DNA of 64,000 nucleotides, taken from Epithemia pelagica (taxonomy: Eukaryota > Protista > Bacillariophyta). The stretch spans positions 3,224,001-3,288,000 of the forward strand of contig OX337235.1 of assembly GCA_946965045.2 (NCBI GenBank), in the 5' to 3' direction. The notes under the pieces were generated by a model. It did no database searches, was not told the DNA's origin, and was given only the letters and a program-made list of their open reading frames with translations. The translations under genes and the position numbers were made by a program. Below, one piece after another: positions 2,374 to 47,852 of the stretch. The first letter of the stretch is position 1. Each line of letters starts with the position of its first letter.

Positions 2374-2805
2374 GGGCCGCTCGTTCTTCTACTCGTTCCA
2401 ACAGCAACAAGCGCCAACCTGTCTATCGTTGTCGTTTTTTTGTCTCTCGCTGTCTCTTTACACGGTTCTGTCTCTCTTTTTTTTCAACATCCATGCGAAT
2501 GATTTCTGCAGTGCGAATCACGCATGATTCAGCTATGTTGAGATTGGCGAACAGGTGGATCACAGTCCGTGTCATCGCTCATGTACAAATCGCCCATATA
2601 GCGATAGGAAGCCTCTAAACTGGCGATTCCTCCGATCCATCGGAGGGTAGCCATAATCTTCAAAGGAATAAACCAAAGCAAAGGAGTGTATATTTGTGTC
2701 CTTTTGGCTGTCTTGAAAAAAAGCGAAGACTTGCGCACAAGAATGAAGTTTTCAGTATCAAAACTCGCGTGCATTTTGACAACGACGACGACAAAAATGC
2801 TTTTG

Positions 2806-4227
2806 TCATATCAACCTCCATTTTTCCAAAGCATTTCTATAGTTCCATAGGAGACATTTCTCCAATATCTCAGCGGCTGCCAGTGAGTACAAGTCGTCCT
2901 GAGAATTTGACCAGCATTCGTTGAGGTTTTCCACACCAGGAATGGCAGTTACAAGATCCAAGTCGCCGTTGTCTTTTACTTCTGTAATAAGAGTCACACG
3001 ATGATCTTGAGGGTAGAATACGTGAACGTCAGCTCCAGTTATCGTCCAGCGAGCACCTTGGTTCTTGTTCAGTATCGCGTTGTTTCCTAGCTTGGGCAAA
3101 AGTCCCGCGGCAATTCCATTATTGTTAAATTCCAACTCCAATGGAATTCTGAAGCAGGGACAACCATCAATGATACTAATCGTAAACCCGCCCTCAGGTC
3201 GTACTGGCTTGATGGCAAACGTCTGCACTGTTTTTCGACGCTTACCTCTTCCCCGTCCAGTTCCATCAAAGTTTACATGGACGTCCCTGCTCAAAGCAAG
3301 GCGGTTATATTCGGGTGCATCAAGCCATTTATATTTTCCAGTGCATTGGGCGCTTGGGAAAATATGCGCAGACTCCGGCGCAGCAAGTGCAAAGGAGGAG
3401 TCGGTTTCTATCCGTTGGAATCGAAACGTGGTGTCGGTGGTTGATAGAAGAGTCACGTCAACCGAACCTTCGAATGATCTAGTTTCAACCACCATGTCAA
3501 TAGGGGGCGACATCGGATCTGCCTCCCCTGTTCGTGGTTTGTAGTGACTAAGCAAGACTGAGTTTTGAAACGTTCTTGCAAAGGGAGCGATTTCCGTGAC
3601 CTTTGGATGGTCAGTCTTGCTCCCCTGATCATCCAAAAGTTCTAGATCCATCTTGTTATGTAGTAAATACATTTCGACGTCACTAACAAATTTGGTAGCC
3701 CTATCAATTGTCGTGAAAACCACCGAAAACCTGAGGATTGAACGATCCTCTTGGGAACTCGCCACAGTTTCGAACGCAGTTTCTGCATCCAATTCTGGTG
3801 GATACAATCCACCAGGACAAGCCAATTTGAATAGCTGGAAACGGGCACCGCCGTGGCTTATGGGTCGAGATATCGTCCCTGATACTTTTTGAAATCGCTG
3901 GTCTGCCGCATCTGCAATCGCCGCATCTGCCTTCGCGGGTGCCATGGCAATCACGGGACGTGGTGTTCTTTCGCCGGGCAACGGGTCTGTGCTAGGAACT
4001 TCCTCCCATGGCTTAATAAACTTGTCTTCGTAGCCTTCAATCGTCACATCGGTGTCGGGGGGGTACACGGAAAGATTTGCCGCATCACAATGGCTGAGGG
4101 AATGTGGTAGCTCTGCCTTTACTTCCTTCGTCAAGTCAGCAACATCTTTAGGTGCTGGATTAATGTTAATGGGATGGCCCGCCGGTTTTTCCTTTCCCTC
4201 GTAATATAGCTGAACCCAGACAGACAT
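2806..4227 (-). CDS. CR (Crinkler/RHS-type) effector-like gene 1: header A + HNH cassette X
   Basis: Starts MSVWVQL, header ends VIAMAP (equivalent of the CRN HVLVxxP motif); C-terminal ESAHIFP...NRLALSRDVHVNFDG matches the HNH_2-type nuclease pattern. Start placed at the ATG at 4227. Confidence 0.8.
   Translation of the reverse strand: MSVWVQLYYEGKEKPAGHPININPAPKDVADLTKEVKAELPHSLSHCDAANLSVYPPDTDVTIEGYEDKFIKPWEEVPSTDPLPGERTPRPVIAMAPAKADAAIADAADQRFQKVSGTISRPISHGGARFQLFKLACPGGLYPPELDAETAFETVASSQEDRSILRFSVVFTTIDRATKFVSDVEMYLLHNKMDLELLDDQGSKTDHPKVTEIAPFARTFQNSVLLSHYKPRTGEADPMSPPIDMVVETRSFEGSVDVTLLSTTDTTFRFQRIETDSSFALAAPESAHIFPSAQCTGKYKWLDAPEYNRLALSRDVHVNFDGTGRGRGKRRKTVQTFAIKPVRPEGGFTISIIDGCPCFRIPLELEFNNNGIAAGLLPKLGNNAILNKNQGARWTITGADVHVFYPQDHRVTLITEVKDNGDLDLVTAIPGVENLNECWSNSQDDLYSLAAAEILEKCLLWNYRNALEKWRLI
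3859..3923. repeat. 65-bp hinge J, copy 1
   Basis: TATGGGTCGAGATATCGTCCCTGATACTTTTTGAAATCGCTGGTCTGCCGCATCTGCAATCGCCG, identical at 11874, 27713 and 43357; encodes AIADAADQRFQKVSGTISRPI on the minus strand. Confidence 0.97.
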
Positions 4228-4638
4228 GACGTATACTCGATGCCTACAATACGGCAAAGTTCGAGAGAATTATGGTTGCAACCGCTTTCTTGTGGTCTTT
4301 GACGACGGCGAACAAGTCGATCGAAGACGACAGGATGGATGGAGGCAGGCAGCAAACTGGCCCGCCCAGATAAACACGCGCGCAGCTCCTCCTAATTTGA
4401 GCCCGCGTTCCGGCTGGAGCGTCCGAGGTTGGCAGTACATATTTCAAAGGCCAACCTCGGACGCTCTCGGCGGGGAAGCACGAGTTGGTACGGACCACCT
4501 AACGAGCGGATGACGGACAGTGTATGGTGGCAACCAGTCCGAAAAATGGAATTTTTCTGCGCGTGATCGCTGAAACTCAAAATGTTGTGCACGAAAAATG
4601 ATACCACCACGGACTGAAAATCAACGATTAGAGGCTAA

Positions 4639-7600
4639 CTCCGTATCTAGCTATGCAGGTAGTTCTGCTCACATTTTTATAGTAGAGTAGGAAATTATTG
4701 TACGAGCGGGAGGTAGTAATTACCGAAAGTTCGCGCGATTCGCGCAGAAAAACGCCGGGCGAGCAAACCAAGGGGGAAAACCGGACCACAGGAGAAAGAG
4801 ACGGACGAAACGATGGTAACGACGATACCAAAGAGAGACGAAGCAATAGACGAGCATTAGAAATAGCAAGTTGAATGTGAGAATAGGAACAATAAAGCAA
4901 CAATCAGACAATATTCGAGGACTTACAATGCCGGGGATCAATCAGTGACAACTGAGATACCTGTGAAACACTGATAGTATTGTCAGTCGACAAACTCAAG
5001 GGCGACAAAAGATCCAAAGACAGGACAAAAGACTCACCAACCCAGCAATTATGAAGACTTCTTTGCAGTACATAAAGGAGAATGGAGAGAAGGATAGAAG
5101 AAAACCATGAAGAATATGAAAAGAAGTCATGTACTGCGAACAGAATGAAGTAAAGAGTGAGATTGATGCATATGGAAATAAGCATAAAACAGAAAGAAAC
5201 TTACCAAACCACCAGTCAACCAGACCGCTTCTTGCCATGCTTCTTGTACTTGCGTTGATTTGAGTGGTTGGGTGCAAGTTGTTGATATGAAATGGCTCCT
5301 GGTTGCTGGATACCAAGGATGGGTGGTTGAATCGTAGGGGGTACCATGCCAGGTTGAGGAAGGCCAAATTGCAAAGGGGCAGACTGAAGAACAGGTTGTT
5401 GAAGAATGGCTCCATAAAAGGGTTGCTGGGGTGGCGGTGGTTGGTAAGACTGAACAAATGGGGCCATGGGAGCAAACTGTTGAGGTTGCTGCTGGGCGAA
5501 AAACATTGGTTGTGGTTGTTGCATTGAAACATGATGCATGCCATGGGTAATGCATGGTATGGTGCCATGATTGGATGATGCTGATGACATCGACGACGAC
5601 GAAACAGGAGTACTCGAAGAAGAAGCATTCACCTTTGAATCAGACTTCTTCGTGGTTTTTTCACGGGGAGAAGAAGGAAAAACATCCCAGTCAAAACCAT
5701 CAAACAACGAACAAGTGGACTCATCTTCAGCGTCTATATCCAAAGGCGCGGCAGCTGGTGACTTCTTGTCCTTCGATGCACAAGGTTTCGAATCATCGGG
5801 TTCTGTGACGAACAAACAAGGAAAGGTAAGACAAGTGTCAATGGAAATGAAACAATCAGCAATCAACGACAGATGAACGTACCAGTTTTGACCGTCACAG
5901 CTTTGGCGTCAGAATACCAATTCGCAGTCAAAAGCTTTGCGTACGATTCAGAGCGAAGCTCCTGGTACGCAAAACTTGCCTGCTGGTCCGTCTTGTGGCG
6001 CCCAAACTTATTTACAAGCTTCTGTGGTGCGCCGGATGCCACAACGTTAGAAATACCGGTACGACGGCCTGTACGTGCAGTCGTACGTTGCCAGTCTTCT
6101 AAGCCACACCTCTTGAAGAGGATTTTGGCATTCTCGTTCGGTCAGTTCTTTCCCAGCTGCCCGATCGGTCGCATCGGTGGAGGTCCAGTGAATCCCTGAG
6201 CGACTGCCTTCTTGTATTTCGCTATGACGTCTTTGGACATGTCGCGAACCAACATGGTGCCAGCCCACCACTTGTCATTCGCAGATGGACGAGCCTTGCG
6301 CTCCTTGTCGGTGGCAATGTTTAGAAAAAGCAGTCCTGTCCAGCCAGGAGGAAGGGCGTGCTCGATCCAGTACTTTAGTAATTTGTACGTGGACCACGGG
6401 TCATCGGGGTTGTCGACTACCACATTCAATTCACGCTCATCCTCTCCATCCAGAGTCGGATTCGTCAGCGAGAGCTTCGAGCATTTCTCGCGAGAGCACT
6501 CTTTCAATTTGTATGCGGGAAGACCTTTCAAAGAACCATACGACTCAGGCAGCGCGGCAATATGCACTAAATCAGACACTCTTAATTTAGTAGTCTGTGA
6601 CAGAAAATCAACGTGTGAGAGCGGAAGAAGACACATGAAAAACCAACAATCCAACAGTACTTACTTCAATGGTACCACGTGGACCAAAGTCACGTTGCGA
6701 CTTGTACACTGTCATGCGTAGCAAATCGATTGGGACTCCGAAAGGATTGAAGGGGGGGTCCGCTTTGTTGCGGAATAAAAACTCGTCGTTCTCGACAACC
6801 TTGGCTTTCTTTGGACGGCGACCAAAGTCGGGCCGGATTTCAGCTTCGTCTTCAAAAAGTTTCTTACAAAACGCGTGAAAGGATTGCGGAAGATTGGCAA
6901 GATCCAAGCTGCTATATTGGATGCCGTTTGCATGAAAAACAGCAAACAGGTGGTCCAACATCTTCTTGATCACGGCGGGTTGATAAATCTTACCAGCCCT
7001 CGTGTAGAGGTTGGAGACGAAGACGTACAAAGCGAGGTTGAGCAGCTTGGCCTTCTCTGGTGTCTTGTAACCACGTAACAAGACGAAGAGTCGCAGAGTT
7101 TGTTTCGTAGAGTTGTCTGGATCGGGCATGACCTCGGTAAGTTTGAAGAGATCCTGGTGACGGGCCAAGATGCTCAGGAACCGTTCGACTGTTCTAGCTT
7201 TTTCGCGCTCATAGCCTGCCGTGTTCATTGACAGGTCGGTGAAAGATACTTTCTTGGCGTCGGCGCCATAGACGCGATCGTTCGAAATCGTTGCATACGA
7301 TGCCCAGGCATCGATGTCATCGGGAGTCTCGACAATCTCGGGAAGAGGGTTGGTCGCAAGGAAGTCCAGCGTGATCTTGCCTGTTGCTTGGTCTACCACC
7401 AAATTGGACCGGGACGAAGCAGCTTGTGCAGTCAATTTTAAGGATGGTGCAACAGGAACGGGGACGGTTGAGGTGTCTGCTGCTGCTGCCATTGACCTGG
7501 GAAAACAACAATCATCCACGAGGTTAGAAGAGAAGCGACCACCATGGAGAACCACTCATACAACAATTAACTTACACAGCTGGATCGTTTGATTGCTGTT

Positions 7601-8887
7601 GTCGCAACGAGTCTTCCACGGTAGATCCTCGGGTGGAAGGAACGTTTACCTCTCTGTTTGGCAAAAAGACGCGGTGAACAGAATGAGAAAAAGAACGAGG
7701 CGACAACAAAAACACAACAATCAAAGACTCTTACTCGTTGTGAGGAATGGGTTGAAGAGAGACAGGGTTCTCGGAAGTCTTGGATTGCTGTTGCATGCGG
7801 GTAGGACGACGGGTGGAAGGAATGTTCGTCTCTCTGTTTCGGAAAAAGAGGAAGCAACCATGAGAGTCTGAAGGAGGAGCGACACAAAGAAACACAACAA
7901 TCAAAAGAACTTACTGGTTGACAGGGATGGGCTGAAGAGGAACAGGGTGCGTCGGTTTGTTCGACTGCTTTGGAACAGGAACATGCAACGATCGTTTCTT
8001 GAGGAGAGACGACGAGTTACCATTGGATTCAGCAACGGCGGTAGAGATGCTGCGAGTTTTGCGAGACCCCGATACACGAACTGGAGACGCCTCATTCTCC
8101 TTGTTCGAAGTTGAGGCGGAAGCAGCGGCGGCTTTCTTCTTGTTGGCATTACGGGTCTTCATGGTTCGACTGCTGTTCTCAAAAACAAGTTGACACAAGA
8201 AATGAGAAATGAGAAATGACAGTATGAGGGAGGAGAATGAGGATGCGTGACAGTCGAAGGAAGATTTGAATTGCTAAGTGCGACCAGGAAGATTTGGACG
8301 CAAAAGGAAGACCACCATGGCCAAAATGGAGGAAAACAGGCCAAATCGATATGAAAACACAACAATCAAACAAGAAAACTTACAGTTCACAGGATCTTGG
8401 CGCCCTTGAGGCATCTGTGGAGTCGTTGTTGTCTTTGGAGCTCTCCTTGGTGAGATCTATTACGGTAACCCCCCTTCCTTCCCAGTTGAACATGTTGTCG
8501 GGCTCGTCGAAGATGAAGAGATATGAGGAAGACGAATCCGATGACTCCGAGGACTGGGACAGGGAGTCCGATACCAAATCAATCACAGACATGCTCAAAA
8601 CCAACAATCAAACACTTTTTGAAGTAGAGAAGCCGTCCAGAATGATGATCTCATTGTCGTCGACCTTCCTTTCTCCAGTTCTCGGATCGAGAGCAAGGAG
8701 ATGTCGACGAGATCTCTGGGGCCTAAGTGATCCGATGAACGGAATGTTTCAAATTTACATATTATAAGTAACAAGTTTATTTAAAGACTAAATTTTCTGA
8801 TGGGACTCCAAAATTTCCTCAACAGACATGTCCTGCTTATTAATTATAGAAGGGAGGTGAGAACTACCTGCATAGCTAGATACGGAG
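4639..8887 (-). mobile_element. TIR-bounded tyrosine-recombinase (Crypton-like) DNA element, 4249 bp
   Basis: Perfect 28-bp inverted repeats CTCCGTATCTAGCTATGCAGGTAGTTCT (4639-4666 and 8860-8887); TAA on both sides (4636-4638, 8888-8890); internal spliced YR gene. Confidence 0.8.
5216..8592 (-). pseudogene. Intron-rich tyrosine recombinase (Crypton-type) with one in-frame TGA
   Basis: Exons approx 8592-8384, 8172-7915, ~7830-7728, ~7650-7580, 7496-6665, 6594-5883, 5802-5216 join in frame via GTAAGT/GTAAGA/GTACGT..CAG introns. Motifs FGPRGTIE|TTKLRVSDL (box I), GQLGKN, TARTGRRT, GRH and Tyr (FAY). Stop at 6144-6142. The 3' end may extend through a further intron. Confidence 0.8.
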
Positions 8888-8893
8888 TAAGCA

Positions 8894-9070
8894 GATTACT
8901 CCCCTGTGTTTCTTAGTCCTTTCTCGTCGGGCGCCCGGCTGGTCGGGAGAATGACTCATCGGGCACATGTCTTGTCGGGCATGCGCCCTCCTCGCCACGT
9001 GCCCTCCTCGTCATTCTACCCTCCACGCCGGGCGACCCTCCTCTAAAGGACTAATACACCGTGAAGTAAT
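8894..9070. mobile_element. Possible small degenerate MITE
   Basis: Imperfect inverted ends GATTACT..GTGT..TTAGTCCTTT / AAAGGACTAA.ACAC..AGTAATC around a GC-rich core; no clear TSD. Confidence 0.35.
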
Positions 9071-9215
9071 CCTACTACTACATTACCTAGTTGGTTTCTG
9101 AAACTTAAAATTTCTTGTGGGTCATCACGACCCCAGCGACTGATTTTGACCTTAAATCGCTGAATAGAAAAATGTGCTGGGCGAAAAAAATGAAACACCG
9201 CCGTCTTTTTTAGCC

Positions 9216-9524
9216 TCATCGGATATATGAATGAGAAGACGCCGCGTTGACGCTTTGTGCATTGCCATTCACTGTAAAGCTTGTCAAGTTGACCATGTTT
9301 CCAACCTCGGTGGGGATTGGTCCAGTGAAATCATTGTAACTCAAATCCAAACGAATGTCTAAATTCAAGGCAAATATCTCCGGAATCAAGGTACCATTCA
9401 TTCGATTGCTCCCCAAGGATAGGTCACGCAGGTTGTCATTGGCTACTAGCCTAGGTCCGAACAGCAGCACCATTGTCGGTGGAAGTGGCCACGACCAAAT
9501 CAAACCATTCGGCCGTGACCACAA
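9216..9524 (-). pseudogene. Leucine-rich-repeat (plant-type extracellular LRR) gene fragment
   Basis: LRDLSLGSNRMNGTLIPEI and LDLSYNDFTGPIPTEVGNMVNLTSF follow LxLxxNxLxGxIPxExxxL; only about two repeats, no start context. Confidence 0.7.
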
Positions 9525-36262: not shown

Positions 36263-38427
36263 CTAGTATATATATAGATTCGAGAGAAAAACAGTGAAGT
36301 TGCTTTACGATTGATGATGAGGAAGATCTAGGTAGAGAATGGAGGAGGAAGAGGACTTGTTCTTTTTGTCTCTCTCTTTTTTCCCTTCTTCCATTTGCTG
36401 TTGTGCTGTGCAAAAAAAGAAGAGAAAAGAGGGGGAGCGGTGGCAGCAGCCGCCGTCGAACATCACCAACCTATACTCCCTAGCAAATTTAAAAGAATAT
36501 CTTTTGTTCCTTCTTTCTACTAAAATCCCTGACCGACTCCCTACGCATCCAATGGTACAAACAATATCGCTGGGATGTATACATTTCGGATTCGGGACCG
36601 CTGTGCCCCGCCGAAGGCCGAATGCCGAACGTGGTCCAACTGGCACTGGCGTTGTGTCGCGGATACGTCACATTTACCCACGTCAGTTTCTGAGCTACAA
36701 ATGTTGAAGTTCCTCGGTACGCAGCTGTTGGTAAAGGCCTGTGTGTCGCTGTGTTTGGAACGTGATTGGTCGCGGTTGAGAGCTACGACAATGCGTCTGG
36801 GGAAGTTCCCCCGGCGCGCACAAACATAGTCACAAAGCATCTCGTCTGTCGCCTCTCGGTGGATCAATTCTCACACACCAAGACTACCCTACTACTTCTT
36901 GAGTTGTGTTGATTCTCCGTGTGGGTCCAAGAGCGAGATACAGCAGGAGGGATGCAAGGTGTCCCCCGAAAACGGGTGGTCTTTGGGGTGGTGGCAGCCG
37001 CTACATGTCTCCATGTCACGACCCTCATGATACAGAGAGAGAGAGAGAGAGACCATGGGGCTGTGGAACACGTTCCGTCACACGGGTTGTGCCACTCGTG
37101 ATGATGAACCGAGAGGATTCTTGGTTTGTTCGTTCGGCCGACCACAAGAATTGGCACACCATATATCAGGACTATATACCTAGAATAGAAACAGCCTCCT
37201 CCTCCAGAGGCAGAGGTGGCAGACACTTGGCGTTCCATCACAGCAGCACCACCAAACCAACACGGTCCCCCTAAAGGACCAACATGGATCAATCTCTCGC
37301 TGTCGGTAGACTCCTCAGCCAGGTTGCTGGAATCTCTGCCGACTGGCGTAGTAGTCACTCAATTTCCTCTTGGTCGTCCATCCCAATCGAGTCCAGGACG
37401 AGATGCCAGATTGGATTGGGTTGGTATAATATTCTTGTGATTGACAGAGAGAGGCCGTGGGTGTTGGATTCGACCGTGGATCTTGTGGGGAGAATCTTGG
37501 AATGGTAGCTGTTGCCGTGGCTGGGTTTGTGGCAAGAGTGCGAGCCCCGCAAATACGATAATCGATAGATCTTGAGGAGGAATGAGGATCCATCCATTCG
37601 TGTTCATTTGTGATATCATCGAGTGTATCTTGTTCTTCCAACTGTTGTTCTTCTGGAGGAGCAGCTGGCTGTGGCTCCACACTGGACAGAATCGTTGTGA
37701 CTGCTACTACAAGGGTTTGAACCGAGAGGCAATTTGGGCAAGAGTAAATTCCAAATCGATCGTTCTTGGCAGGCGACTCTCGTGGAACACGGAATGTTGT
37801 CATTAAGGGAGAAAATCGGGCTCAGGAGGACCACGTTCCGTCGTCACTTTTGCCATTCTTGTGTAGATTCGTCCTCAGCCGACCAAAACAATCGTAAGGT
37901 TCGGAGGAACGTTCCATGAGAAAACAGCCTCCTCCTCCAGGCGGCGGCGGCGACGCATTTTGCGCTCCACCAAGCCGAAGAACGACTCGTGGTTGCACGG
38001 TTGGCGAAACTGCACAGACTGTTGATGCGTTTGTGTTGGAGGGTCCCGAGTTCCTCTTTTCTACTGCGTGAACATGGCGACGCCGGTGGTGGCCACCGCT
38101 ATATCGTTGCGAGACAAGGGGGATTGTATCTTCCCCAACCCCACCCCAAGGGCGTGCGACGCGTCACCGACCCTCGGCCTGACGTGACGCGTTGGAAGAA
38201 TGACGAACTGGACGAAATAACGTCACCATTGACGAAATGAGATACACAAGGTAGGAGTACAAGGTACTCCTCTAGACTTATTATGAGTACAGGAGTAAAA
38301 GGGAACAATGGAACTAACGGGTAGACGTGACATGACGCGTTTTTCGTCAATTCAGATGACGAAATGGAATCGTGACGCCGTCACAGTAGCATCCTTGGTA
38401 CTCTCGTTACGGGACTGGGGGATCACG

Positions 38428-39368
38428 GCAGCCGCTGCATGTCTCCATGTCTCGACCTCGATCCTGTCGTCCATGGATCTCCTGTCTCCAACCTTTTGTC
38501 GGGTCATCGCTACAGACAGATGATCCCGCACATGATGTGTCATCGATCCAGTCTTTTCCTCCGGCGCCAGTTCCTTTTACAGTGCATGGTCATTTGCACT
38601 ATGCCAAAACGGGAGGTTCGACAATCAACGGTATGTTGGCGGCCAAATACGAACGCGTCTGTGGGCACAAGGGATATAGCTACGACTTACCAGTTCAACA
38701 AACGAGTCGAACAGGAAATGCAAAGACGGAATGTCAAAACAATTTCCGTACAAGCAGGAGGCAATGATGTCATTTGAAAATCATACACAAAGATGAATCG
38801 AGGACGAGTGCCGCAAGCAGTCATGGATGAAATTGGTTATGAAAATTGCGATTACATTAGCCTGGAAGCAAATTGGACTGTTTGGAATCGAATGGATGGC
38901 ATTTGGAATTTTGAACTTCACGTTCCCTGTCGCGATCCACTCGACCACCTCCTGTCCCAGTGCAACTTCAAAAACAGATCATTTGACTGTCAAGCCGACA
39001 ATGTCAGAAAGGAAATTCAATCCTGTTTTGTCAAACCCGACCGGTTTCATCCCAAGATGGTACGGAAACACCGACCACACTTCAAGAACCATTCGGTCAA
39101 GTGCTTCAATCCGATTCCAGTGGAGCCATATATGGCTTACATGGATGAGCGTCTCCAACACAAGCGCATTCCGGCAACTTATATGCATCGAGGTACCAAT
39201 AAAAAGCGTCACAAGGAAAGAGAATGTTTGTATCATGAAAACAACACTGAGATTGCCAATAAGGTTACGCAATACTTGGTACAAAAGGTTCCGTATTATC
39301 GATGGTGTCATCAATGTTTGAGGGACCCTGACATGAACTTGCTGTTTCATGTTACTACAACGGAATAA
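38428..39368 (+). pseudogene. Sulfotransferase-like pseudogene, copy 2
   Basis: Start codon removed by a ~250-bp deletion; 2-nt deletion near 38686; CGA>TGA near 38775; retains KYERVCGHKGYS and MDEIGYENCDY, which are broken in copy 1. Confidence 0.7.
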
Positions 39369-40548
39369 AGAATGGATATAGCGAAATTGCAGACTACAGA
39401 TGGTGGAAGGAATATATTCCAGTTTGCATGCTCGTCCACGTGTCCACCAGATCCTTGCAAAGAGAGAAAATAATGCCAACTGTTTTGGTATGTCGTGTTC
39501 TATCCTCTGGCAAATAAAATAATAATGAACTACTCCTATTGCACACTTCTAGACAGAGTCGCACACAGGTACCACAGTTCCAAAATGCATTGGCATCCCA
39601 ATCCAATCCTTGGGATGCTAGAGTAGGCGTGTGTACTTGGGATGGTACTGGATGTGCTCCCGGTGCCTTCTTCTCCCGGGGTTTTCTCGTCCCATCAGTG
39701 GCTTGTGTTTTGACAGTTCCAGAACATGATCCTCAGTGCTAGGAGTTGTTGTCAGTGGGTCGTCCATCCAACTTGGTTTCGATTTGTTGGAGACGAGCGA
39801 CGTGAAATTCAAGGTTACTGTGTTGTGACGTTACACCACCACGGAAGGCAAACTAGTGCCTGTGCTTCTCAAGGTAGTAGACCATGAGAGTCTACGGTTC
39901 GAGAACCCAGGCACACAAACACGCACACGAATCCATGAATGCATTCCCCTTGCGACAATCATCACACCACCACAAAACTCACTGGATGTTGCGGCTGCCG
40001 TCGAACCACCACTGTGTAACCTTAGTACGTGTCACCTTCCGTCCTGGAGCAATTTTAAGTCCACCCCGTCACAACAACAACAACAACAACATCAGTAGAT
40101 TTGTTTCCATTGTCCCACAAACTGTGGTCGCTTCACCGTTCTTCTGGAAAGCCTTCTTTCATCAGTCTTGTTGGAAGTCAAAATGGTACACAACAACTTT
40201 GTATTTCCAGAGTAGTATATAGGACCGCCACTTTCTCTTGTTTTTCGAGGACCGTGAGTTTTCCCTCCCCTCGTCGTGCTGGAGCATTTCCGTCCATGCA
40301 GAGAGTCTTGCAGTGTCACATCTTAGCCAAGGCATATTATTATGGTGCTTTCGTACATGTTTGGTGGGTACTGGATCACAACACACCCGTGTCTCATCCC
40401 ATTTCTCTGATCGTGGTCCATGGTTGGTTGGTGTGGCACGTCCTCGGGTCGCCCCCAACTACCATCCACCGCAACCTATTCTACACGAGAGAAATTCCTG
40501 TCGTACTAACGAACTTGAACGCGTCGTTGTGGGAATACTCGCCGCCAA

Positions 40549-41871
40549 TCATTCCTCCGTTTCTGGTTCGGCGAGTGCTTGTTCTTGTTGTTCTTGTTCT
40601 TCCAGTCGTTGAAGGAGGGCCATGGCCAGGTCGGGTTTGTTGCAACACACTTGATCGACGCCCGTGTCCAACAGGGCTTGATAACAGGCGGGGCCCTCCT
40701 CGGATCCCACATCGTTATACTTTTGGGGCAAGTCTTGGACCATGCCGACGGGTCCCCGGAACCAGGCCATGCTGGTCAAATTGGCGGCGGCCAGGGCGGC
40801 GACACGGTGTCGCGTACATTCATGGTAGGGGACATGAACTTGCGTGGCTCCACACGCCCGAGCGGCCGCCACCAAGTCCTTTGGCAGAGGCGACCCAAAC
40901 AAGGCACCCGTCGGATACCGGACCGAATCGGGTCGCAAGGTTCGCAATTCCTGCAATTGGGCATGATCAAAACTACTGTACGTACACCGCGTCGTCATTT
41001 TGTTGTTGTGGTTGTCTTGGTCAAAGGATTCCACCACGTCCAAGACGGGTTGGACCGTCCGCGGTCCCTTGAGTTCAATGGTAATGGTCAAGTTCGGGTA
41101 GGGTTGCAAGGCCACCAGTACATCCTGGAGGAGGGGAATGCGGGCCCGGGCCACCTCTTCCGGGGCCAAGTGGGCAAATTCGGGATAGGTGGGATCCAAT
41201 CGCAAGGCTTGGACTTGGGACCAGTCCAAGTCTTGAATGGTTCGAGTTTTGGCGTCGTTTTTCTCATGGTCGTCGTGGTCCCACAAGACTTGTCCGTAGA
41301 GGGATCCCAAGGGCAGACCGGGACTGTCATTGCCATGAAAGACCACCACGGATCCATCGCGAATCACGTACACGTCCAGTTCGACACCATGACACTGTGT
41401 GACACAGGCGAGAAAGGAGGGAATGGTATTTTCCAAGGCGTAATGCAAGGCGCCTCGATGACCCAAAATGCGAGGCCCTTTGGTAGTAGTACGACGAGGA
41501 GTCGACACTGGAGTTGTCACACCCAAAACGTGACGCAAGGACAAGGACGACGACGCTTCCTTAGGGGAGGAGGAAGATGTCTCGAAGGTTTGGTTTGGTT
41601 CCTCTTGCGCCATGCTTTTGGTACAATGCCTCGCCAAGGAATGGTACTTGTTGTTGTAGTTGTGGTTGTTGTGGTTTCGTTGGATCGACCAAGACCCGAC
41701 CAAGGATGCAGACAGTAAAGGAAGCAGCAGCAGCAGCAGCAGCAGCAATGGATGAACGATCCAAATCCCGAGAAATCTCCTCACCCGTGGTGGTTGTGTC
41801 GTTGTGGAAGCAAGAGTATTATTTTTTGTACGATCGACGACGATAAGTCTAGTAGGGACCACCATTCGCAT
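40549..41871 (-). CDS. GDPD-family phosphodiesterase, copy 3
   Basis: Same motifs; poly-Leu tract two codons longer through (GCA)n slippage. Confidence 0.92.
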   Translation of the reverse strand: MRMVVPTRLIVVDRTKNNTLASTTTQPPRVRRFLGIWIVHPLLLLLLLLLPLLSASLVGSWSIQRNHNNHNYNNKYHSLARHCTKSMAQEEPNQTFETSSSSPKEASSSLSLRHVLGVTTPVSTPRRTTTKGPRILGHRGALHYALENTIPSFLACVTQCHGVELDVYVIRDGSVVVFHGNDSPGLPLGSLYGQVLWDHDDHEKNDAKTRTIQDLDWSQVQALRLDPTYPEFAHLAPEEVARARIPLLQDVLVALQPYPNLTITIELKGPRTVQPVLDVVESFDQDNHNNKMTTRCTYSSFDHAQLQELRTLRPDSVRYPTGALFGSPLPKDLVAAARACGATQVHVPYHECTRHRVAALAAANLTSMAWFRGPVGMVQDLPQKYNDVGSEEGPACYQALLDTGVDQVCCNKPDLAMALLQRLEEQEQQEQALAEPETEE

Positions 41872-42303
41872 GGGCCGCTCGTTCTTCTACTCGTTCCAAC
41901 AGCAACAAGCGCCAACCTGTCTATCGTTGTCGTTTTTTTGTCTCTCGCTGTCTCTTTACACGGTTCTGTCTCTCTTTTTTTTCAACATCCATGCGAATGA
42001 TTTCTGCAGTGCGAATCACGCATGATTCAGCTATGTTGAGATTGGCGAACAGGTGGATCACAGTCCGTGTCATCGCTCATGTACAAATCGCCCATATAGC
42101 GATAGGAAGCCTCTAAACTGGCGATTCCTCCGATCCATCGGAGGGTAGCCATAATCTTCAAAGGAATAAACCAAAGCAAAGGAGTGTATATTTGTGTCCT
42201 TTTGGCTGTCTTGAAAAAAAGCGAAGACTTGCGCACAAGAATGAAGTTTTCAGTATCAAAACTCGCGTGCATTTTGACAACGACGACGACAAAAATGCTT
42301 TTG

Positions 42304-43725
42304 TCATATCAACCTCCATTTTTCCAAAGCATTTCTATAGTTCCATAGGAGACATTTCTCCAATATCTCAGCGGCTGCCAGTGAGTACAAGTCGTCCTGA
42401 GAATTTGACCAGCATTCGTTGAGGTTTTCCACACCAGGAATGGCAGTTACAAGATCCAAGTCGCCGTTGTCTTTTACTTCTGTAATAAGAGTCACACGAT
42501 GATCTTGAGGGTAGAATACGTGAACGTCAGCTCCAGTTATCGTCCAGCGAGCACCTTGGTTCTTGTTCAGTATCGCGTTGTTTCCTAGCTTGGGCAAAAG
42601 TCCCGCGGCAATTCCATTATTGTTAAATTCCAACTCCAATGGAATTCTGAAGCAGGGACAACCATCAATGATACTAATCGTAAACCCGCCCTCAGGTCGT
42701 ACTGGCTTGATGGCAAACGTCTGCACTGTCTTTCGACGCTTACCTCTTCCCCGTCCAGTTCCATCAAAGTTTACATGGACGTCCCTGCTCAAAGCAAGGC
42801 GGTTATATTCGGGTGCATCAAGCCATTTATATTTTCCAGTGCATTGGGCGCTTGGGAAAATATGCGCAGACTCCGGCGCAGCAAGTGCAAAGGAGGAGTC
42901 GGTTTCTATCCGTTGGAATCGAAACGTGGTGTCGGTGGTTGATAGAAGAGTCACGTCAACCGAACCTTCGAATGATCTAGTTTCAACCACCATGTCAATA
43001 GGGGGCGACATCGGATCTGCCTCCCCTGTTCGTGGTTTGTAGTGACTAAGCAAGACTGAGTTTTGAAACGTTCTTGCAAAGGGAGCGATTTCCGTGACCT
43101 TTGGATGGTCAGTCTTGCTCCCCTGATCATCCAAAAGTTCTAGATCCATCTTGTTATGTAGTAAATACATTTCGACGTCACTAACAAATTTGGTAGCCCT
43201 ATCAATTGTCGTGAAAACCACCGAAAACCTGAGGATTGAACGATCCACTTGGGAACTCGCCACAGTTTCGAACGCAGTTTCTGCATCCAATTCTGGTGGA
43301 TACAATCCACCAGGACAAGCCAATTTGAATAGCTGGAAACGGGCACCGCCGTGGCTTATGGGTCGAGATATCGTCCCTGATACTTTTTGAAATCGCTGGT
43401 CTGCCGCATCTGCAATCGCCGCATCTGCCTTCGCGGGTGCCATGGCAATCACGGGACGTGGTGTTCTTTCGCCGGGCAACGGGTCTGTGCTAGGAACTTC
43501 CTCCCATGGCTTCATAAACTTGTCTTCGTAGCCTTCAATCGTCACATCGGTGTCGGGGGGGTACACGGAAAGATTTGCCGCATCACAATGGCTGAGGGAA
43601 TGTGGTAGCTCTGCCTTTACTTCCTTCGTCAAGTCAGCAACATCTTTAGGTGCTGGATTAATGTTAATGGGATGGCCCGCCGGTTTTTCCTTTCCCTCGT
43701 AATATAGCTGAACCCAGACAGACAT
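42304..43725 (-). CDS. CR effector-like gene 4: header A + HNH cassette X
   Basis: Near-identical to gene 1 (I>M in header, E>V in cassette). Confidence 0.8.
   Translation of the reverse strand: MSVWVQLYYEGKEKPAGHPININPAPKDVADLTKEVKAELPHSLSHCDAANLSVYPPDTDVTIEGYEDKFMKPWEEVPSTDPLPGERTPRPVIAMAPAKADAAIADAADQRFQKVSGTISRPISHGGARFQLFKLACPGGLYPPELDAETAFETVASSQVDRSILRFSVVFTTIDRATKFVSDVEMYLLHNKMDLELLDDQGSKTDHPKVTEIAPFARTFQNSVLLSHYKPRTGEADPMSPPIDMVVETRSFEGSVDVTLLSTTDTTFRFQRIETDSSFALAAPESAHIFPSAQCTGKYKWLDAPEYNRLALSRDVHVNFDGTGRGRGKRRKTVQTFAIKPVRPEGGFTISIIDGCPCFRIPLELEFNNNGIAAGLLPKLGNNAILNKNQGARWTITGADVHVFYPQDHRVTLITEVKDNGDLDLVTAIPGVENLNECWSNSQDDLYSLAAAEILEKCLLWNYRNALEKWRLI
43357..43421. repeat. 65-bp hinge J, copy 4
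   Basis: Identical to other copies; context cassette X + header A. Confidence 0.97.
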
Positions 43726-44073
43726 GACGTATACTCGATGCCTACAATACGGCAAAGTTCGAGAGAATTATGGTTGCAACCGCTTTCTTGTGGTCTTTGA
43801 CGACGGCGAACAAGTCGATCGAAGACGACAGGATGGATGGAGGCAGGCAGCAAACTGGCCCGCCCAGATAAACACGCGCGCAGCTCCTCCTAATTTGAGC
43901 CCGCGTTCCGGCTGGAGCGTCCGAGGTTGGCAGTACATATTTCAAAGGCCAACCTCGGACGCTCTCGGCGGGGAAGCACGAGTTGGTACGGACCACCTAA
44001 CGAGCGGATGACGGACAGTTTATGGTGGCAACCAGTCCGAAAAATGGAATTTTTCTGCGCGTGATCGCTGAAA

Positions 44074-44353
44074 GGGGGTATGTTATCGGGCGCGCGGAGC
44101 ATGGGCGGAGCATGGATATGGGGGGAGCAATGCATGCTCCACGATGCATGCTCCGCGCGTCTAAGACTTCGACTGTTCGACGCATTGAGTGTGTGGCGTG
44201 TGGACGCGTGATTTTGCTTCCAACCATGCTCCACCCGCACTCTTCCTCCGCATGTAAATTTTGCGGAGGAAAGCTCTATATCCGGGTTGGTTTGGCCTTT
44301 CTCCGCCCATATCATGCTCCGCACATGCTCCGCGCGCCCGATAATATACCCCC
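44074..44353. mobile_element. MITE family 1 (280 bp, ~55-bp imperfect TIRs)
   Basis: GGGGGTATGTTATCGGGCGCGCGGAGCATG... / ...CATGCTCCGCGCGCCCGATAATATACCCCC; repeated CATGCTCC/GGAGCATG motif; TTA on the right, AAA on the left, so TSD not confirmed. Confidence 0.85.
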
Positions 44354-44369
44354 TTAGCATGCCGGCTTA

Positions 44370-44860
44370 GGCCGTTCCTTGATATTCTGCAAAAACAAAA
44401 GTTGGAGGGTGACACGTCACAAAAAACCCGGAAATATGGCGTCAAATCCGGGTTCGACGCTGTTTCAGCTTTTGAGGCTGCAAAAGTTGGGTCCAACTTT
44501 TGCAGGCCGGCAAAAGCTGAACAGACATTAGGGATAGTGCTTTCTTTTTGCTAGTGTACATTGGGCCTACAGAAACAAAAATGACGGTTTAGGATTTTTT
44601 GAACGGCGCGCGTTCGACTCCAACGGTCCCCCTAACCTCAATGAAGAGGAAGACGGAACGTCCTCCTAATGTCTTACTTTGATAATTGTAGTATTCAAAT
44701 CATCAAAGTGAATATGGGGACTATTGGGGGCCTTGGGGGAAAAAGTGCGGTTATAGGTTTTGGTTTTGTAAATGCCAAAGGACGGCGTGTCGCGCAATTG
44801 TCTACAAAAAGGTGATGTCATGTGTCGATTTTTGTTTTTGCAGAATATCAAGGAACGGCC
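44370..44860. mobile_element. PIF/Harbinger-like MITE family 2 (491 bp)
   Basis: Perfect 31-bp TIRs GGCCGTTCCTTGATATTCTGCAAAAACAAAA; TTA on both sides (44367-44369, 44861-44863); no coding capacity. Confidence 0.9.
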
Positions 44861-45021
44861 TTACCCGACACGTTCATTCTGAACTCAGTCGAACTACCTA
44901 CCTAGAGCATTTAGCATCCCCATTTCAATTTTTCATTTTTCCACAAGATCTTTTCTCTTTTAAGATGTTATTCTCTTGTACTTGATACAGACCATCGTCC
45001 TCTTCGTAATCGCAACGGGTG

Positions 45022-47151
45022 TCAATGTTCGCGAGCAGACAATTCACGCCATTGTTCCGGCAACCACCTTTTACCGGAAACCCCAAAGAAGCTTCGAAGC
45101 TGTGGTCTTGCAAGACAAGTCCATCCGCGCCTCTCTGATGGATTGACAGCAGGATGCCCACGGACAAGATAGGAATTGGGCAACGTGGCAGGTTGATTTG
45201 GAATCTCTTTCCCTTCCTTTAGTTGGTATCCATAGAGATCATATGTGACAACCCCTGACTTTACATCCTTTTGCCACAAACAAACAAAAACATCGTACTC
45301 TGGAAATTTAGCAAACTTCGGGTAGTAAATAGAAACTTTGGGGAAGTTCCCCTCCCAGTGATGGTTCGAACAGATTTCACCCAGTGCCTTCTGCAATTCT
45401 TCAAGATTCTTGACCATCGATATGGTCCGAGTGGCGGGCAATGGATAATTATAAAAGAGACTTGTCGAAATCGTCTTCATTTCGAAACTCACAGTTGGGA
45501 TGCACGAGACATCTCCAAAATTACCAGAAACATATCGCAACCAGAGAACAAGCAAAAACAAAGACTCCCATCCATCACCGCTTTCTTCTTTGCTCGTGCT
45601 CCAACTTTTCGCATCTTGTACGACTTGACTTTGCGATAGTCCGAAACGACCTTGGATTGAATCTGCAAGATTTCCCAACAACTCCATCAAATAGCATGGT
45701 ATCCAATAGCTTTTGCCATTGCCGTTATCCAAAAGTGCGTCAATATTCGTCCCTAGTGGCTCTCCGGAGAAGAAAGATCCCAAGACTCTTTGCAGCAAGT
45801 CGAAGTCCAATGTTGTACCACTACAAGCCCTCTCTGTACGACGGGCGATCTGCGCTTTCTCAGCGAGCCCTTCAACCGTAAGAGTTGTCACCAGCAATGC
45901 CGGAATGAGGCCGTAATAGAGAGCCATTCGCGGCGTGAGATCGGTGATATTTAGATTTTGTCTTGCACCTGATAGATCCTGAATCAGCGGTAAGGTTTTA
46001 ACTTCCATGTCACGAGAGGAAAGGGACGGCAATGCTTTTTCTGGATTTGTTGAGCTCAAATGGGAAGAAAACACATAGTATCTTCCTCGTTGGGTGAGAA
46101 AGTTCTCCTTCAAGAAAAGTACAATGTCTTTGTCCAACTCCACGTTGTTCAACTCGTCAATCAACAATACGACTTGGTTGGTCCCAAGAAAAGAAGACAC
46201 CTCGTCTGCCGTGATGCTGTATTTCTTGAAGGCTTTAAAATCATCACTTATCGCACCTGTCCTTAAACTCGCTGGACGAGCATCAAACGCAATCCGCCGG
46301 CAAAGCATTTCAAGACTCGAGTCTCCTCTCAAAATCTCATAATCGCAATTGGAGAAGTCGTTGAATGAGACAAAGAGAGTTGGAATACACTGTTCGCGAA
46401 GTGCCTTTGCCAACTCGTAGAGTGCCCTCGTCTTCCCTCCCCTGGAGCAGCGAGCCAGGGAAGTGATTGGGACTCGGTACGATCCATCGGCTGCATCCTC
46501 CTTCAGGCACAAATCCGTCACCCTCCCCACGATGTCATCAAGCCATCCTTCTTGGCTTACGAACGGAGGTGTGATCGGTTCAAGATGAGGAATTTCCAAG
46601 AGGTTCATCCACTGTTGAGCCGGAATGCGGATTCTTTTTGGCGGACTTGCCTCTGGCACTGTCCATTGCACGCTTTTAAGTTTTGAGTTAAAATAGTAGG
46701 TCCGCCCCTCGCCGTCTACCATTTCTTGCCATCCTTCTGGAAGGGGCGGTGAATCTGCCGGTTGAGCTGGAATGCGGATTCTTTTTGGCGGATTAGCCTC
46801 AGGCACTGTCCATTGCACGCTTTTAAGTTTTGAGTCTGCAATCGCCGCATCTGCCTTCGCGGGTGCCATGGCAATCACGGGACGTGGTGTTCTTTCGCCG
46901 GGCAACGGGTCTGTGCTAGGAACTTCCTCCCATGGCTTCATAAACTTGTCTTCGTAGCCTTCAATCGTCACATCGGTGTCGGGGGGGTACACGGAAAGAT
47001 TTGCCGCATCACAATGGCTGAGGGAATGTGGTAGCTCTGCCTTTACTTCCTTCGTCAAGTCAGCAACATCTTTAGGTGCTGGATTAATGTTAATGGGATG
47101 GCCCGCCGGTTTTTCCTTTCCCTCGTAATATAGCTGAACCCAGACAGACAT
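45022..47151 (-). CDS. CR effector-like gene 5: header A + WW domain + NTPase + REase cassette Z
   Basis: Header A identical to gene 4; LPEGWQEMVDGEGRTYYFNSKLKSVQWTVP is a WW domain; P-loop-like ARCSRGGKT, Walker B LLIDE, YGLIP; REase-like SGDGWESL..FPEYDVFV..YGYQLKEG. Confidence 0.82.
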   Translation of the reverse strand: MSVWVQLYYEGKEKPAGHPININPAPKDVADLTKEVKAELPHSLSHCDAANLSVYPPDTDVTIEGYEDKFMKPWEEVPSTDPLPGERTPRPVIAMAPAKADAAIADSKLKSVQWTVPEANPPKRIRIPAQPADSPPLPEGWQEMVDGEGRTYYFNSKLKSVQWTVPEASPPKRIRIPAQQWMNLLEIPHLEPITPPFVSQEGWLDDIVGRVTDLCLKEDAADGSYRVPITSLARCSRGGKTRALYELAKALREQCIPTLFVSFNDFSNCDYEILRGDSSLEMLCRRIAFDARPASLRTGAISDDFKAFKKYSITADEVSSFLGTNQVVLLIDELNNVELDKDIVLFLKENFLTQRGRYYVFSSHLSSTNPEKALPSLSSRDMEVKTLPLIQDLSGARQNLNITDLTPRMALYYGLIPALLVTTLTVEGLAEKAQIARRTERACSGTTLDFDLLQRVLGSFFSGEPLGTNIDALLDNGNGKSYWIPCYLMELLGNLADSIQGRFGLSQSQVVQDAKSWSTSKEESGDGWESLFLLVLWLRYVSGNFGDVSCIPTVSFEMKTISTSLFYNYPLPATRTISMVKNLEELQKALGEICSNHHWEGNFPKVSIYYPKFAKFPEYDVFVCLWQKDVKSGVVTYDLYGYQLKEGKEIPNQPATLPNSYLVRGHPAVNPSERRGWTCLARPQLRSFFGVSGKRWLPEQWRELSAREH
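46614..46835 (-). repeat. 147-bp-period repeat (1.5 WW units) in gene 5
   Basis: 46614-46688 and 46761-46835 both encode SKLKSVQWTVPEAxPPKRIRIPAQ. Confidence 0.9.
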
Positions 47152-47779: not shown

Positions 47780-47795
47780 TTAGCATGCCGGCTTA

Positions 47796-47852
47796 GGCCG
47801 TTCCTTGATATTCTGCAAAAACAAAAGTTGGAGGGTGACACGTCACAAAAAA
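47796..47852. mobile_element. Truncated left end of MITE family 2
   Basis: TTA + 31-bp TIR, then homology stops in an A-run. Confidence 0.8.

Follow-up and report, generated by a model that had tools for sequence, protein, structure and literature searches.

Candidate Crinkler-type genes in a diatom locus with signs of recent rearrangement between headers and cassettes

CR (Crinkler-RHS-type) effectors, introduced by Zhang, Burroughs, Vidal, Iyer and Aravind in 2016, are described in the summary given in PMC5289972 as proteins in which ubiquitin-like headers are joined to interchangeable enzymatic C-terminal modules. The CRN effectors of oomycetes are modular, and in the 2009 model of Haas, as outlined in PMC5289972 and in PMC3726527, they carry the motifs LxLFLAK, DWL and HVLVxxP. 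We identified five genes in a 64-kb window (the whole stretch of DNA that was analysed) that resemble CR effectors in having a header assigned to the PF20147 family and closed by a conserved hydrophobic strand whose last residue is P, in their predicted module classes (HNH, P-loop NTPase with restriction endonuclease (REase) and, in relatives, trypsin), and in the pairing of one header with several tails and of one tail with several headers. In contrast to CR effectors, they occur in a free-living diatom, they mostly have the header on an exon of its own, and one cassette (Z) has WW repeats between the linker and the NTPase. A literature search, beyond whose reach the 2016 paper defining CR effectors lay, found no paper describing CR genes encoded by diatoms.

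With oomycete CRN genes the locus shares its modularity, recombination inferred just past a conserved hhhhxxP motif, and clustered families with tandem copies. However, the diatom headers have neither the LxLFLAK motif nor the DWL region and start with an S-V-W-V-Q-type sequence, and the diatom junctions can be read to the base, most of them being non-homologous. Like the Rhs/CDI polymorphic toxins of bacteria, the genes have a constant N-terminal part and variable enzymatic tips exchanged near a short conserved junction, but they are eukaryotic and contain introns, and each of the window's cassettes is attached to a header, with no promoter-less orphan cassettes. No immunity gene was recognised beside any cassette. 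X and the GDPD gene are direct neighbours; the short ORFs that follow Y, as well as those in two further loci (L001 and L007), matched no family except for one leucine-rich repeat, which is weak evidence.

Our main reading, to which we assign a probability of roughly 0.6, is that the window holds five intact diatom CR genes that have undergone recent rearrangements, among them a crossover at a 65-bp sequence (the hinge), non-homologous joins and conversion of a header exon.

Gene layout and headers

A survey of open reading frames located five minus-strand genes at the positions given in the preliminary description (2806, 10260, 26660, 42304 and 45022), and all five are open (Table 1). They comprise the pairings A+X (genes 1 and 4), B+Y (gene 2), B'+X (gene 3) and A+Z (gene 5), so header A is present three times and B and B' once each. 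Each protein would consist of a ubiquitin-like Crinkler header ending in a P-L-I-V-V-A-P-type motif, a short low-complexity linker, and one of three unrelated cassettes. In the B and B' genes the header exon is followed by a canonical GT..AG intron of 163 nt in phase 0, by eight B-specific codons and then by the hinge. The hinge had been placed just after the motif that ends the header (VIAMAP in A, LIVVAP in B and B'). This needs amending for B and B', where LIVVAP lies on a separate exon and the intron and eight codons intervene. Other in-frame ATGs occur in gene 2 upstream of the first exon, at 12528, and downstream within that exon.

Table 1. Positions of genes, hinge copies and repeated blocks in the window
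Feature	Position	Strand	Remarks
Gene 1: header A, hinge, cassette X	2806..4227	-	ORF; 473 aa from ATG; without intron; relatives; AF2 model
Gene 2 exon 2: 8 B-specific codons, hinge, cassette Y	10260..11960	-	
Gene 2 intron	11961..12123	-	163 nt, GT..AG, phase 0; predicted from sequence; same as gene 3 intron
Gene 2 exon 1: header B, LIVVAP motif and Q run	12124..12498	-	
Gene 3 exon 2: 8 B-specific codons, hinge, cassette X	26660..27799	-	At tandem-unit seam
Gene 3 intron	27800..27962	-	163 nt
Gene 3 exon 1: header B'	27963..28334	-	
Gene 4: header A, hinge, cassette X	42304..43725	-	
Gene 5: header A, 13 nt of hinge, half WW repeat, one full WW, cassette Z	45022..47151	-	
Hinge copy 1	3859..3923	-	Exact 65 bp
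Hinge copy 2	11874..11938	-	Cassette-side edge is end of homology to C+Y paralogue L001
Hinge copy 3	27713..27777	-	Putative junction of tandem duplication
Hinge copy 4	43357..43421	-	Exact 65 bp
Tandem unit 1	11874..27712	.	15,839 bp: hinge, B header, 489-aa gene, 392-aa gene, kinase, INO1, GDPD, cassette X
Tandem unit 2	27713..43356	.	99.1-99.3% identical to unit 1; without 247 bp found at 22564-22810 of unit 1
Duplicated block: GDPD, X, hinge, A and 350 bp upstream	1..4575	.	99.7% identical to 39493-44073
1018-bp block: A header, upstream region, inverted-repeat element	46835..47852	.	100% identical to 43409-44426; left end is the A-Z junction

The assignment of the headers to the Crinkler N-terminal (PF20147) family, with a predicted ubiquitin-like fold, holds by transitive evidence. 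The window's own proteins gave no direct match to PF20147 or HNH_2. A profile built from A, B and B' retrieved 220 representatives, and 24 of the 104 that were scanned match PF20147 (best E 1.6e-101); one protein that is approximately 50% identical to gene 1 over its full length (P0008) passes the threshold, scoring 26.8 bits against a cutoff of 24.6. The header is beta-beta-alpha-beta...beta in the AF2 model, and the seven columns of the P-L-I-V-V-A-P motif are kept in 79, 80, 86, 89, 69, 87 and 85 of 96-97 homologues, respectively. When the A, B and B' headers were read for a motif of the LFLAK type none was found, and their conserved start is S-V-W-V-Q-L-Y-Y-like. Together with a match of cassette Y to a trypanosome RHS model, these results bear out the CR-type genes proposed earlier. 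Every relative found is from a diatom (Cylindrotheca, Fragilariopsis, Nitzschia, Seminavis, Grammatophora or Attheya), in agreement with the probable diatom origin that had been suggested.

The free combination of headers and cassettes is likewise supported beyond the window. In another assembly of the same genome we found C+Y, an N-terminal part with two WW repeats and Z, and A+Y. Among the homologues, one type of header is joined to X in P0011 and to Z in P0051 and P0065.

Predicted cassettes

Cassette X is predicted to combine a ferredoxin-like domain with an HNH_2-like His-Me core that falls below the Pfam threshold. In this core H288, N308 and H317 are nearly invariant, and two relatives match HNH_2 at E values of 3.5e-4 and 3.4e-3, both below the cutoff. 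X had no PDB match by sequence or fold, a Foldseek search with the X model returned no nuclease, and hhalign of the X protein against a protein with a header and HNH_2 linked only the headers.

Cassette Y is probably a P-loop NTPase with a trypanosome-RHS-type (restriction-endonuclease-like) C-terminal domain, the link to REases being drawn from a sub-cutoff match and from motifs. The Walker A and B motifs are invariant, residues 343-477 match positions 571-694 of TIGR01631 (Trypano_RHS) with an E value of 2.9e-9 and 35.7 bits against a cutoff of 89.75, and Q-M-T occupies the position of the expected K. Y resembles trypanosome RHS proteins in this C-terminal match and in the NTPase upstream of it. 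However, it scores far under the family cutoff, it differs towards the N-terminus, and the gene carries no retroelement insertion. Basic patches can be read from the sequences of both X and Y.

Cassette Z comprises a WW domain, an AAA+/STAND-like NTPase, a helical domain and a C-terminal domain with a D..QxK motif. Its model, with a pLDDT of 87, folds as an AAA+/STAND-like NTPase and matches Avs3, Apaf-1, ORC/Cdc6 and MuB at E values from 6e-5 upward. Of 43 sequences, 41-43 keep the Walker A/B residues, D515 and QxK, with 41-42 for the D..QxK motif. The predicted REase fold of Y and Z matched no solved structure. The cassettes had been called HNH and PD-(D/E)xK nucleases; for X, and for the C-terminal parts of Y and Z, these calls stem from motifs and sub-threshold matches. 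The five proteins may have nuclease activity and may act as toxins or in defence.

The hinge, the tandem units and the junctions

The hinge is present as an exact 65-mer in four genes, as had been reported, and its flanks are unrelated on one or both sides. Four exact copies within 64 kb cannot have arisen by chance. The sequence common to genes 4 and 5 runs down to 43409/46835, and gene 5, which breaks inside the hinge as claimed, therefore retains the first 13 nt. The hinge is not supported as a common recombination signal. Instead, it is native A+X sequence, and its 3' half encodes the conserved start of the X family, a W/F-x-K-V-S-G-x-I-S-R-P stretch found in 18 diatom relatives; a homologue with an A-type header, the hinge and X (P0013) is 82% identical. 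We also rejected the option that the four hinges represent four independent events, as genes 1 and 4 are duplicate copies and gene 3 is the seam of tandem units. Judging from the alignment, genes 1 and 4 are copies within a duplicated segment that spans 4.6 kb or more, which may extend further left because its start coincides with the edge of the window.

Self-BLAST places the hinge (h) at all three boundaries of the tandem units (11874, 27713 and 43357), in the order Y-h-B, X-h-B' and X-h-A. The units differ by 0.4-0.9% and by a 247-bp indel, and the window contains no N. At the seam, the left flank of the hinge is that of gene 4 (X) and the right flank is that of gene 2 (the intron and a B-type exon), and deleting either unit gives an identical pre-duplication state. 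This layout is exactly the outcome expected of one crossover between the hinges of genes 2 and 4. As in non-allelic homologous recombination, a direct repeat stands at both ends and at the seam, and the gene at the seam is chimeric, with its left flank from one parent and its right flank from the other. However, the repeat is just 65 bp, and this length is at the low end of those used by homologous recombination.

The positions of the other junctions, and the homologies that define them, can be read directly. At the hinge-Y junction the homology of a C+Y gene (L001, 98%) ends at 11874, and at the A-Z junction the homology of a gene with two WW repeats and Z (L002, 99.6%) ends at 46835, each with 1 bp of microhomology. 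The A+Y gene of the other assembly (L007) consists of A, 46 bp of hinge and Y, with 3 bp of microhomology. These three joins and the one between B and the hinge are non-homologous, with 1-3 bp of microhomology, and are clustered in the linker, presumably because in-frame joins are tolerated there. The preliminary description had all parts swapped at one hinge, which stands for the exchange in gene 3, where the hinge serves as homology, but not for the hinge-Y, A-Z and B-hinge joins, which are illegitimate.

The B and B' exons are mismatched at 37 of 375 positions (approximately 10%, dS 0.12) and have three gap columns. In contrast, the two genes show no differences in the 250 bp of hinge and intron and one mismatch in the 700 bp upstream. 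Because the difference is confined to the header exon, it suggests a gene-conversion patch of the size of that exon.

Proposed history and alternatives

From this arrangement we infer an order of events in which several very recent rearrangements would have assembled the locus. Gene 2 would carry the hinge as a remnant joined non-homologously to Y. An unequal homologous crossover between its hinge (B-h-Y) and that of gene 4 (A-h-X) would have produced the 15.84-kb tandem duplication, with gene 3 (B'-h-X) created at the seam. For gene 5, the 1018-bp block with the A header and upstream sequence would have landed midway in the first WW repeat of a WW-WW-Z gene, with 1 bp of microhomology at the join. 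The proposed crossover presupposes that gene 2 already carried its hinge, gained through two separate junctions. In that case a B+X gene would have pre-existed and gene 3 need not be younger.

It is possible that shuffling chiefly uses the intron behind the header exon, together with gene conversion, and that the identical hinge is a conversion tract rather than a crossover site. Most header homologues are short (83 of 102 have at most 200 aa, and 64 of 94 end within 60 aa of the VVAP motif), with tails that resemble translated GTAAGT or GGTAAG. In addition, a locus with a different header exon (L005) has its intron acceptor inside the hinge, and the B/B' patch coincides with exon 1. However, the A-type genes are intronless, the B intron stops 22 nt short of the hinge, and a conversion tract leaves the 15.8-kb duplication with a hinge at each end unexplained.

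We regard as rather improbable an assembly artefact in which the two haplotypes of one locus were strung together as units 1 and 2, or were misjoined at the hinge. Under this view gene 3 would not exist, and B' would be an allele of the B of gene 2. The divergence between the units, indels included, is allele-like and within the allelic range of diatoms. At the corresponding locus an ENA assembly (ERZ21939226) has a single P-Q unit and no gene 3, with the B exon in surroundings that are otherwise the same and a P copy that matches unit 2 nearly exactly except for the header patch; its contigs break beside the seam, two of them terminating 0.2-1.3 kb from the unit boundary. A check of the B'+X junction against this second assembly found it absent, and no database record exists of the gene 3 product, the B' exon or the unit-1 kinase allele. 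On the other hand, the two contigs are not one molecule because they differ at about 19 alignment columns over a 1.1-kb overlap, and three distinct versions of the P start are present (P1, P2 and ctg1146l). An artefact would also have placed the seam exactly in a 65-bp exact repeat and yielded an intact, in-frame gene. Overlaps of long reads require far more than 65 bp, and an overlap of that length would probably not suffice to mislead a long-read overlapper. The tandem duplication is thus plausible yet unverified, since the independent assembly breaks at the junction with one unit and without gene 3. Of the earlier picture of parental and recombinant genes side by side, the layout fits one unequal crossover, but the recombinant junction is missing from that assembly.

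Less probable still is a history in which gene 3 (B+X) is older and gene 2 (B+Y) derived, a deletion having fused the hinge of an upstream B+X gene to the start of Y in a neighbouring C+Y gene, in a 15.8-kb array that predates the fusion: gene 2 must descend from a header-hinge-X gene because its Y is preceded by the initial 14 codons of the X family, the hinge-Y join is non-homologous, tandem arrays of C+Y occur in the same genome, and the three copies of Q are all about as distant from each other, but at the right-hand end (X-h-A) the hinge must in any case have been broken, which makes this history more costly in events than one crossover, and the deleted X or C header left no trace.

If the hinge crossover, the joins and the conversion took place as we propose, we would tentatively suggest that free-living diatoms keep a large, actively reshuffling Crinkler-type repertoire, in which new combinations appear over the time spans of polymorphism within a species, through three or more routes: unequal crossover within the 65-bp linker, header-exon conversion and microhomology joins. 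The locus would then display parents and product together, as a eukaryotic, intron-equipped counterpart of the cassette exchange of bacterial polymorphic toxins, and gene 3 at the 15.8-kb seam would be, if the assembly is right, a rare, datable case of effector part-swapping. Defence or intraspecific conflict would be favoured over virulence because the diatom has no known host to attack.

In most members of the family, the position of the linker also holds an intron.

The hinge and the tandem array

Recombination directly after the header is held to be the way in which Crinkler-type effectors diversify, a claim based mostly on the comparison of finished genes. At the locus described here the junctions can be read to the base. 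A single exchange is homologous and several others are not, and all of them fall in a linker of about 65 bp. The window DNA is eukaryotic, with about 48% G+C and an N count of zero. The preliminary description had proposed that four of the five CR (Crinkler-RHS-type) genes share an identical 65-bp hinge between header and C-terminal cassette and that gene 5 breaks inside it. This is correct: the 65-mer occurs in four exact copies, and gene 5 has only its first 13 nt in common with gene 4, so the hinge cannot be a chance match.

In 18 diatom relatives the X family opens with a conserved W/F-x-K-V-S-G-x-I-S-R-P stretch, which is the 3' half of the hinge. In addition, in a homologue from a related organism (P0013, 82% identity) a single ORF joins an A-type header to X through a hinge that has diverged slightly. 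Judged from these sequences, the hinge is native to A+X genes. When JGI metagenome contigs were scanned with the hinge and the start of X, no relative was returned.

Self-comparison resolves 11874-43356 into a tandem pair of 15.84-kb units; copies of the hinge mark where the array begins, its seam and the position just past its end. Each unit contains ordinary genes, those for INO1 (myo-inositol-1-phosphate synthase), a protein kinase and a GDPD-domain protein, along with two more. The order along the array is Y-h-B, X-h-B', X-h-A (h, hinge), and removal of either unit leaves the same ancestor, with gene 2 (B-h-Y) and gene 4 (A-h-X). The array is best seen as the footprint of one unequal crossover in the hinge, of which gene 3 would be the chimeric seam gene. 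The earlier proposal of swapping at the hinge would hold at the seam of the duplication, which uses the hinge as homology, but the self-comparison shows that the four hinges do not stand for four independent events. Genes 1 and 4 belong to a larger duplicated block that is cut off by the left edge of the window, and the three copies of the X-containing block are roughly equidistant, with 2-5 private substitutions each per 3.9 kb.

We consider the tandem duplication to be real, possibly heterozygous or strain-specific, with a probability of about 0.65-0.7. That it is an assembly artefact seems unlikely, although the second, independent assembly (ENA ERZ21939226) holds only one unit and has the exact INO1 protein on just one contig, and the divergence between units 1 and 2 is within the allelic range. 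Against an artefact, the window is without gaps, the seam falls inside an exact repeat, and the gene that spans it is intact; a 65-bp repeat is probably too short to mislead long-read overlap. Moreover, the ENA contigs themselves break here. One of 507 kb stops 1.3 kb beyond the gene 2 hinge, another of 69 kb begins 147 bp from the seam hinge, within the intron, and the two differ at about 19 alignment columns over their 1.1-kb overlap, which suggests structural ambiguity exactly at the seam. It counts against the duplication that exact look-ups found no record of the protein of gene 3, of the ORF in exon B' or of the kinase allele of unit 1. Provided that the assembly is correct, the locus is unusually informative. 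A real duplication would date the birth of a new head-tail combination, and would prompt one to ask what role nuclear-type nucleases bearing Crinkler heads play in an alga that is free-living and photosynthetic.

Features of the CR locus, in window positions
Feature	Position	Strand	Description
Gene 1	2806-4227	minus	Header A, linker, cassette X; counted from ATG
Gene 4	42304-43725	minus	Header A, linker, cassette X; counted from ATG
Gene 5	45022-47151	minus	Header A as in genes 1 and 4, then WW repeats and cassette Z
Header exon B	12124-12498	minus	124-125 codons, upstream of ORF at 10260; ends in LIVVAP and a glutamine run
Header exon B'	27963-28334	minus	124-125 codons, upstream of ORF at 26660; ends in LIVVAP and a glutamine run
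Hinge, gene 1	3859-3923		Cassette side X; header side A
Hinge, gene 2	11874-11938		Cassette side Y; header side B-specific codons, then intron
Hinge, gene 3	27713-27777		Cassette side X; header side B-specific codons, then intron
Hinge, gene 4	43357-43421		Cassette side X; header side A
Self-match	1-4575 and 39493-44073		99.7% identity
Self-match	1-3923 and 23855-27777		99.8% identity
Self-match	11874-22563 and 27713-38428		99.3% identity
Self-match	22811-27777 and 38427-43421		99.1% identity
Self-match	43409-44426 and 46835-47852		100% identity
INO1	18760-20406; 34616-36262		Housekeeping gene, two copies with identical protein; carried along by the duplication
GDPD-domain gene	1057-2373; 24911-26227; 40549-41871		Three copies; 1-2 substitutions and a two-leucine indel
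Unit 1 stretch	22564-22810		247 bp, with a short tandem repeat of 22 bp; missing in unit 2 and in ENA contig ctg1146l
Linker direct repeat	3924-3950		A-type genes; 11-nt repeat, 4 nt apart (A-D-A-A encoded twice)
WW tandem repeat	46614-46835		Gene 5; 147-bp unit is the WW repeat
Inverted-repeat element	44072-44355; 47498-47781		284 bp, located upstream of header A in genes 4 and 5; terminal inverted repeats of 62 bp, 90% identical
Copia-type LTR retrotransposon	49026-58793		RVT_2, gag_pre-integrase; just right of the CR cluster; two 721-bp LTRs, 100% identical

Header exons and their probable exchange

The ORF calls bear out the positions first reported for the five long minus-strand ORFs. Those at 10260 and 26660 are best read, from splice-like signals, as starting inside an intron: the B and B' header exons are followed by CAG/GTAAGT, and 163 nt further downstream lies an acceptor that joins the cassette ORF in phase 0. 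The exons of B-type genes were used as separate search queries. A and B headers are 31-33% identical and alignable end to end.

A profile of A, B and B' found 220 cluster representatives. The Pfam Crinkler family, PF20147, is matched by 24 of the 104 header homologues scanned, and others carry HNH_2, AAA or trypsin domains, which appear among the C-terminal classes listed for CR proteins in PMC5289972. The start of the header is conserved (W in 98/102 homologues), as is its closing P-L-I-V-V-A-P strand. Most homologues are short, with 83/102 no longer than 200 aa and 64/94 ending within 60 residues of the VVAP motif, and their tails resemble translated GTAAGT or GGTAAG. Their length and splice-donor-like tails suggest that, as a rule, the header exon of this diatom family has an intron behind it, and a separate header exon would offer a simple route for shuffling. 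Two homologues from outside the window (P0101 and P0102) share about 90% identity with header B over their first 69 residues, whereas the rest of their header is unrelated to B, indicating mosaicism inside headers too.

A Pfam search of the five window proteins returned only the WW domain, and the defining features of CR proteins are found in the window genes through transitive homology. In contrast, the LxLFLAK motif and DWL region of oomycete CRNs are both absent, so these genes are not oomycete CRNs in the strict sense. Our search of a literature library for diatom-encoded Crinkler-type genes found only papers on oomycete parasites of diatoms; the 2016 CR survey may list diatoms.

The B and B' exons (375 bp) differ at 37 positions and 3 gap columns (dS 0.12, dN 0.10), whereas the adjoining hinge and intron (250 bp) are identical between the two copies and the 700 bp upstream have one mismatch and a 10-bp indel. 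ENA contig ctg1146l is almost perfectly matched to unit 2 and the sequence to its right, with 4 differences in 29-38 kb and 0 in 38-46.2 kb. Its header exon is nevertheless B-type, not B'. The exchange of a header-exon-sized patch is therefore recent, or the patch is polymorphic; this putative conversion patch differs between two assemblies of one locus.

Junctions in related loci

Three paralogous loci (L001, L002 and L007) come from the ENA assembly. In L001, Y (98% DNA identity) is preceded by header C, which has 83 residues and is not ubiquitin-like, and homology to the window ends at 11874, the cassette edge of the hinge. In L002, the N-terminal region is basic and is followed by two complete WW repeats and then Z (99.6%), and homology ends at 46835. 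The gene 5 junction, with 1 bp of microhomology, thus halves the first WW repeat, leaving one and a half repeats against the two complete ones of L002. A simple 3.4-kb tandem duplication does not account for gene 5, as the duplicated part is only 1018 bp and there is no second Z copy upstream. L007 lies on the ENA contig that also holds the left part of the window, about 160 kb away. Its header A is 100% identical and leads into 46 bp of hinge, after which come the final 12 nt of header C and Y; the join has 3 bp of microhomology, and one break splits the coding sequence of this A+Y gene into two ORFs. L005, from another sample, has a further header type on its own exon, an intron acceptor inside the hinge, and X at 95%.

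Together with the window genes, these loci show that five or more different junctions fall inside these 65 bp or at their edges. The hinge serves as homology at just one of them, the seam of the tandem duplication. New combinations most likely arise by rare homologous exchange where two genes happen to have linker sequence in common, by header-exon conversion, or by microhomology joins, and only joins located in the linker or intron would survive. The predicted protein, by analogy with the family, would consist of a ubiquitin-like head, a disordered linker and a nucleic-acid-directed enzyme, and may act as an exported toxin, as a defence nuclease or as the product of a selfish gene.

Several further features were observed. 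The breakpoints of gene 5, the B genes, L005 and L006 are all within about 30 nt of the 11-nt linker direct repeat. L006 (1-120, JGI 3300008928) is a contig with 91% protein identity to X, in which the A-type linker and hinge are preceded by an N-terminus of just 19 residues; it is without a ubiquitin-like header, and its leader holds a 22-nt tandem repeat. The ENA assembly has further CR clusters: C+Y occurs in 3.5-kb tandem repeats at a contig end (L001 165-6833), a 551-aa gene and the WW-Z gene together form at least 3 copies of a 5.7-kb tandem repeat at a contig start (L002 1281-15787), and the A+Y gene adjoins a C+Y gene (L007 8001-14759). The duplicate containing genes 1 and 4 stops exactly at the left edge of the 284-bp inverted-repeat element, a related copy of which lies 3' of each Z gene in the other assembly (L002 5946-6152). 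A plain insertion of this element does not explain the difference between genes 1 and 4, as sequence past it is also unmatched. The polyprotein of the Copia-type element is in two long ORFs of different frames, implying at least one break.

Cassettes X, Y and Z

The AF2 model of X (pLDDT 75) has a ferredoxin-like domain followed by a near-invariant core, A-H-I-F-P ... N-R-L-A-L-S-R-D-x-H-x-N-F. Of the CR folds anticipated in the preliminary description, those of the headers are borne out by the PF20147 family, and the cassette matches are below cutoff: two X relatives match HNH_2, and Y residues 343-477 match the trypanosome RHS model at E 2.9e-9. Foldseek with the A+X model gave only weak ferredoxin-like matches (E above 0.04) and none to HNH, and hhalign of the X family against a header+HNH_2 protein linked the headers alone. 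Profiles from the alignments of X, Y and Z had no significant match in the PDB, an NCBIfam search gave no match for X or Z, and a PADLOC run gave none; no immunity-like partner gene was recognised among the neighbours of the cassettes.

Walker A and B are invariant in both Y and Z. The Z model (pLDDT 87, pTM 0.82) has Avs3, Apaf-1, ORC/Cdc6 and MuB as best fold matches, and its C-terminal alpha-beta-beta-beta unit keeps D and Q-x-K in 41-42/43 sequences. In hhalign, Y and Z align only locally, over the strand with the putative catalytic D (probability 4.5%); we treat them as unrelated cassettes. The relatives of X, Y and Z are all from diatoms and include transcriptome sequences from Grammatophora, Fragilariopsis and Amphiprora, which indicates that the family is expressed.
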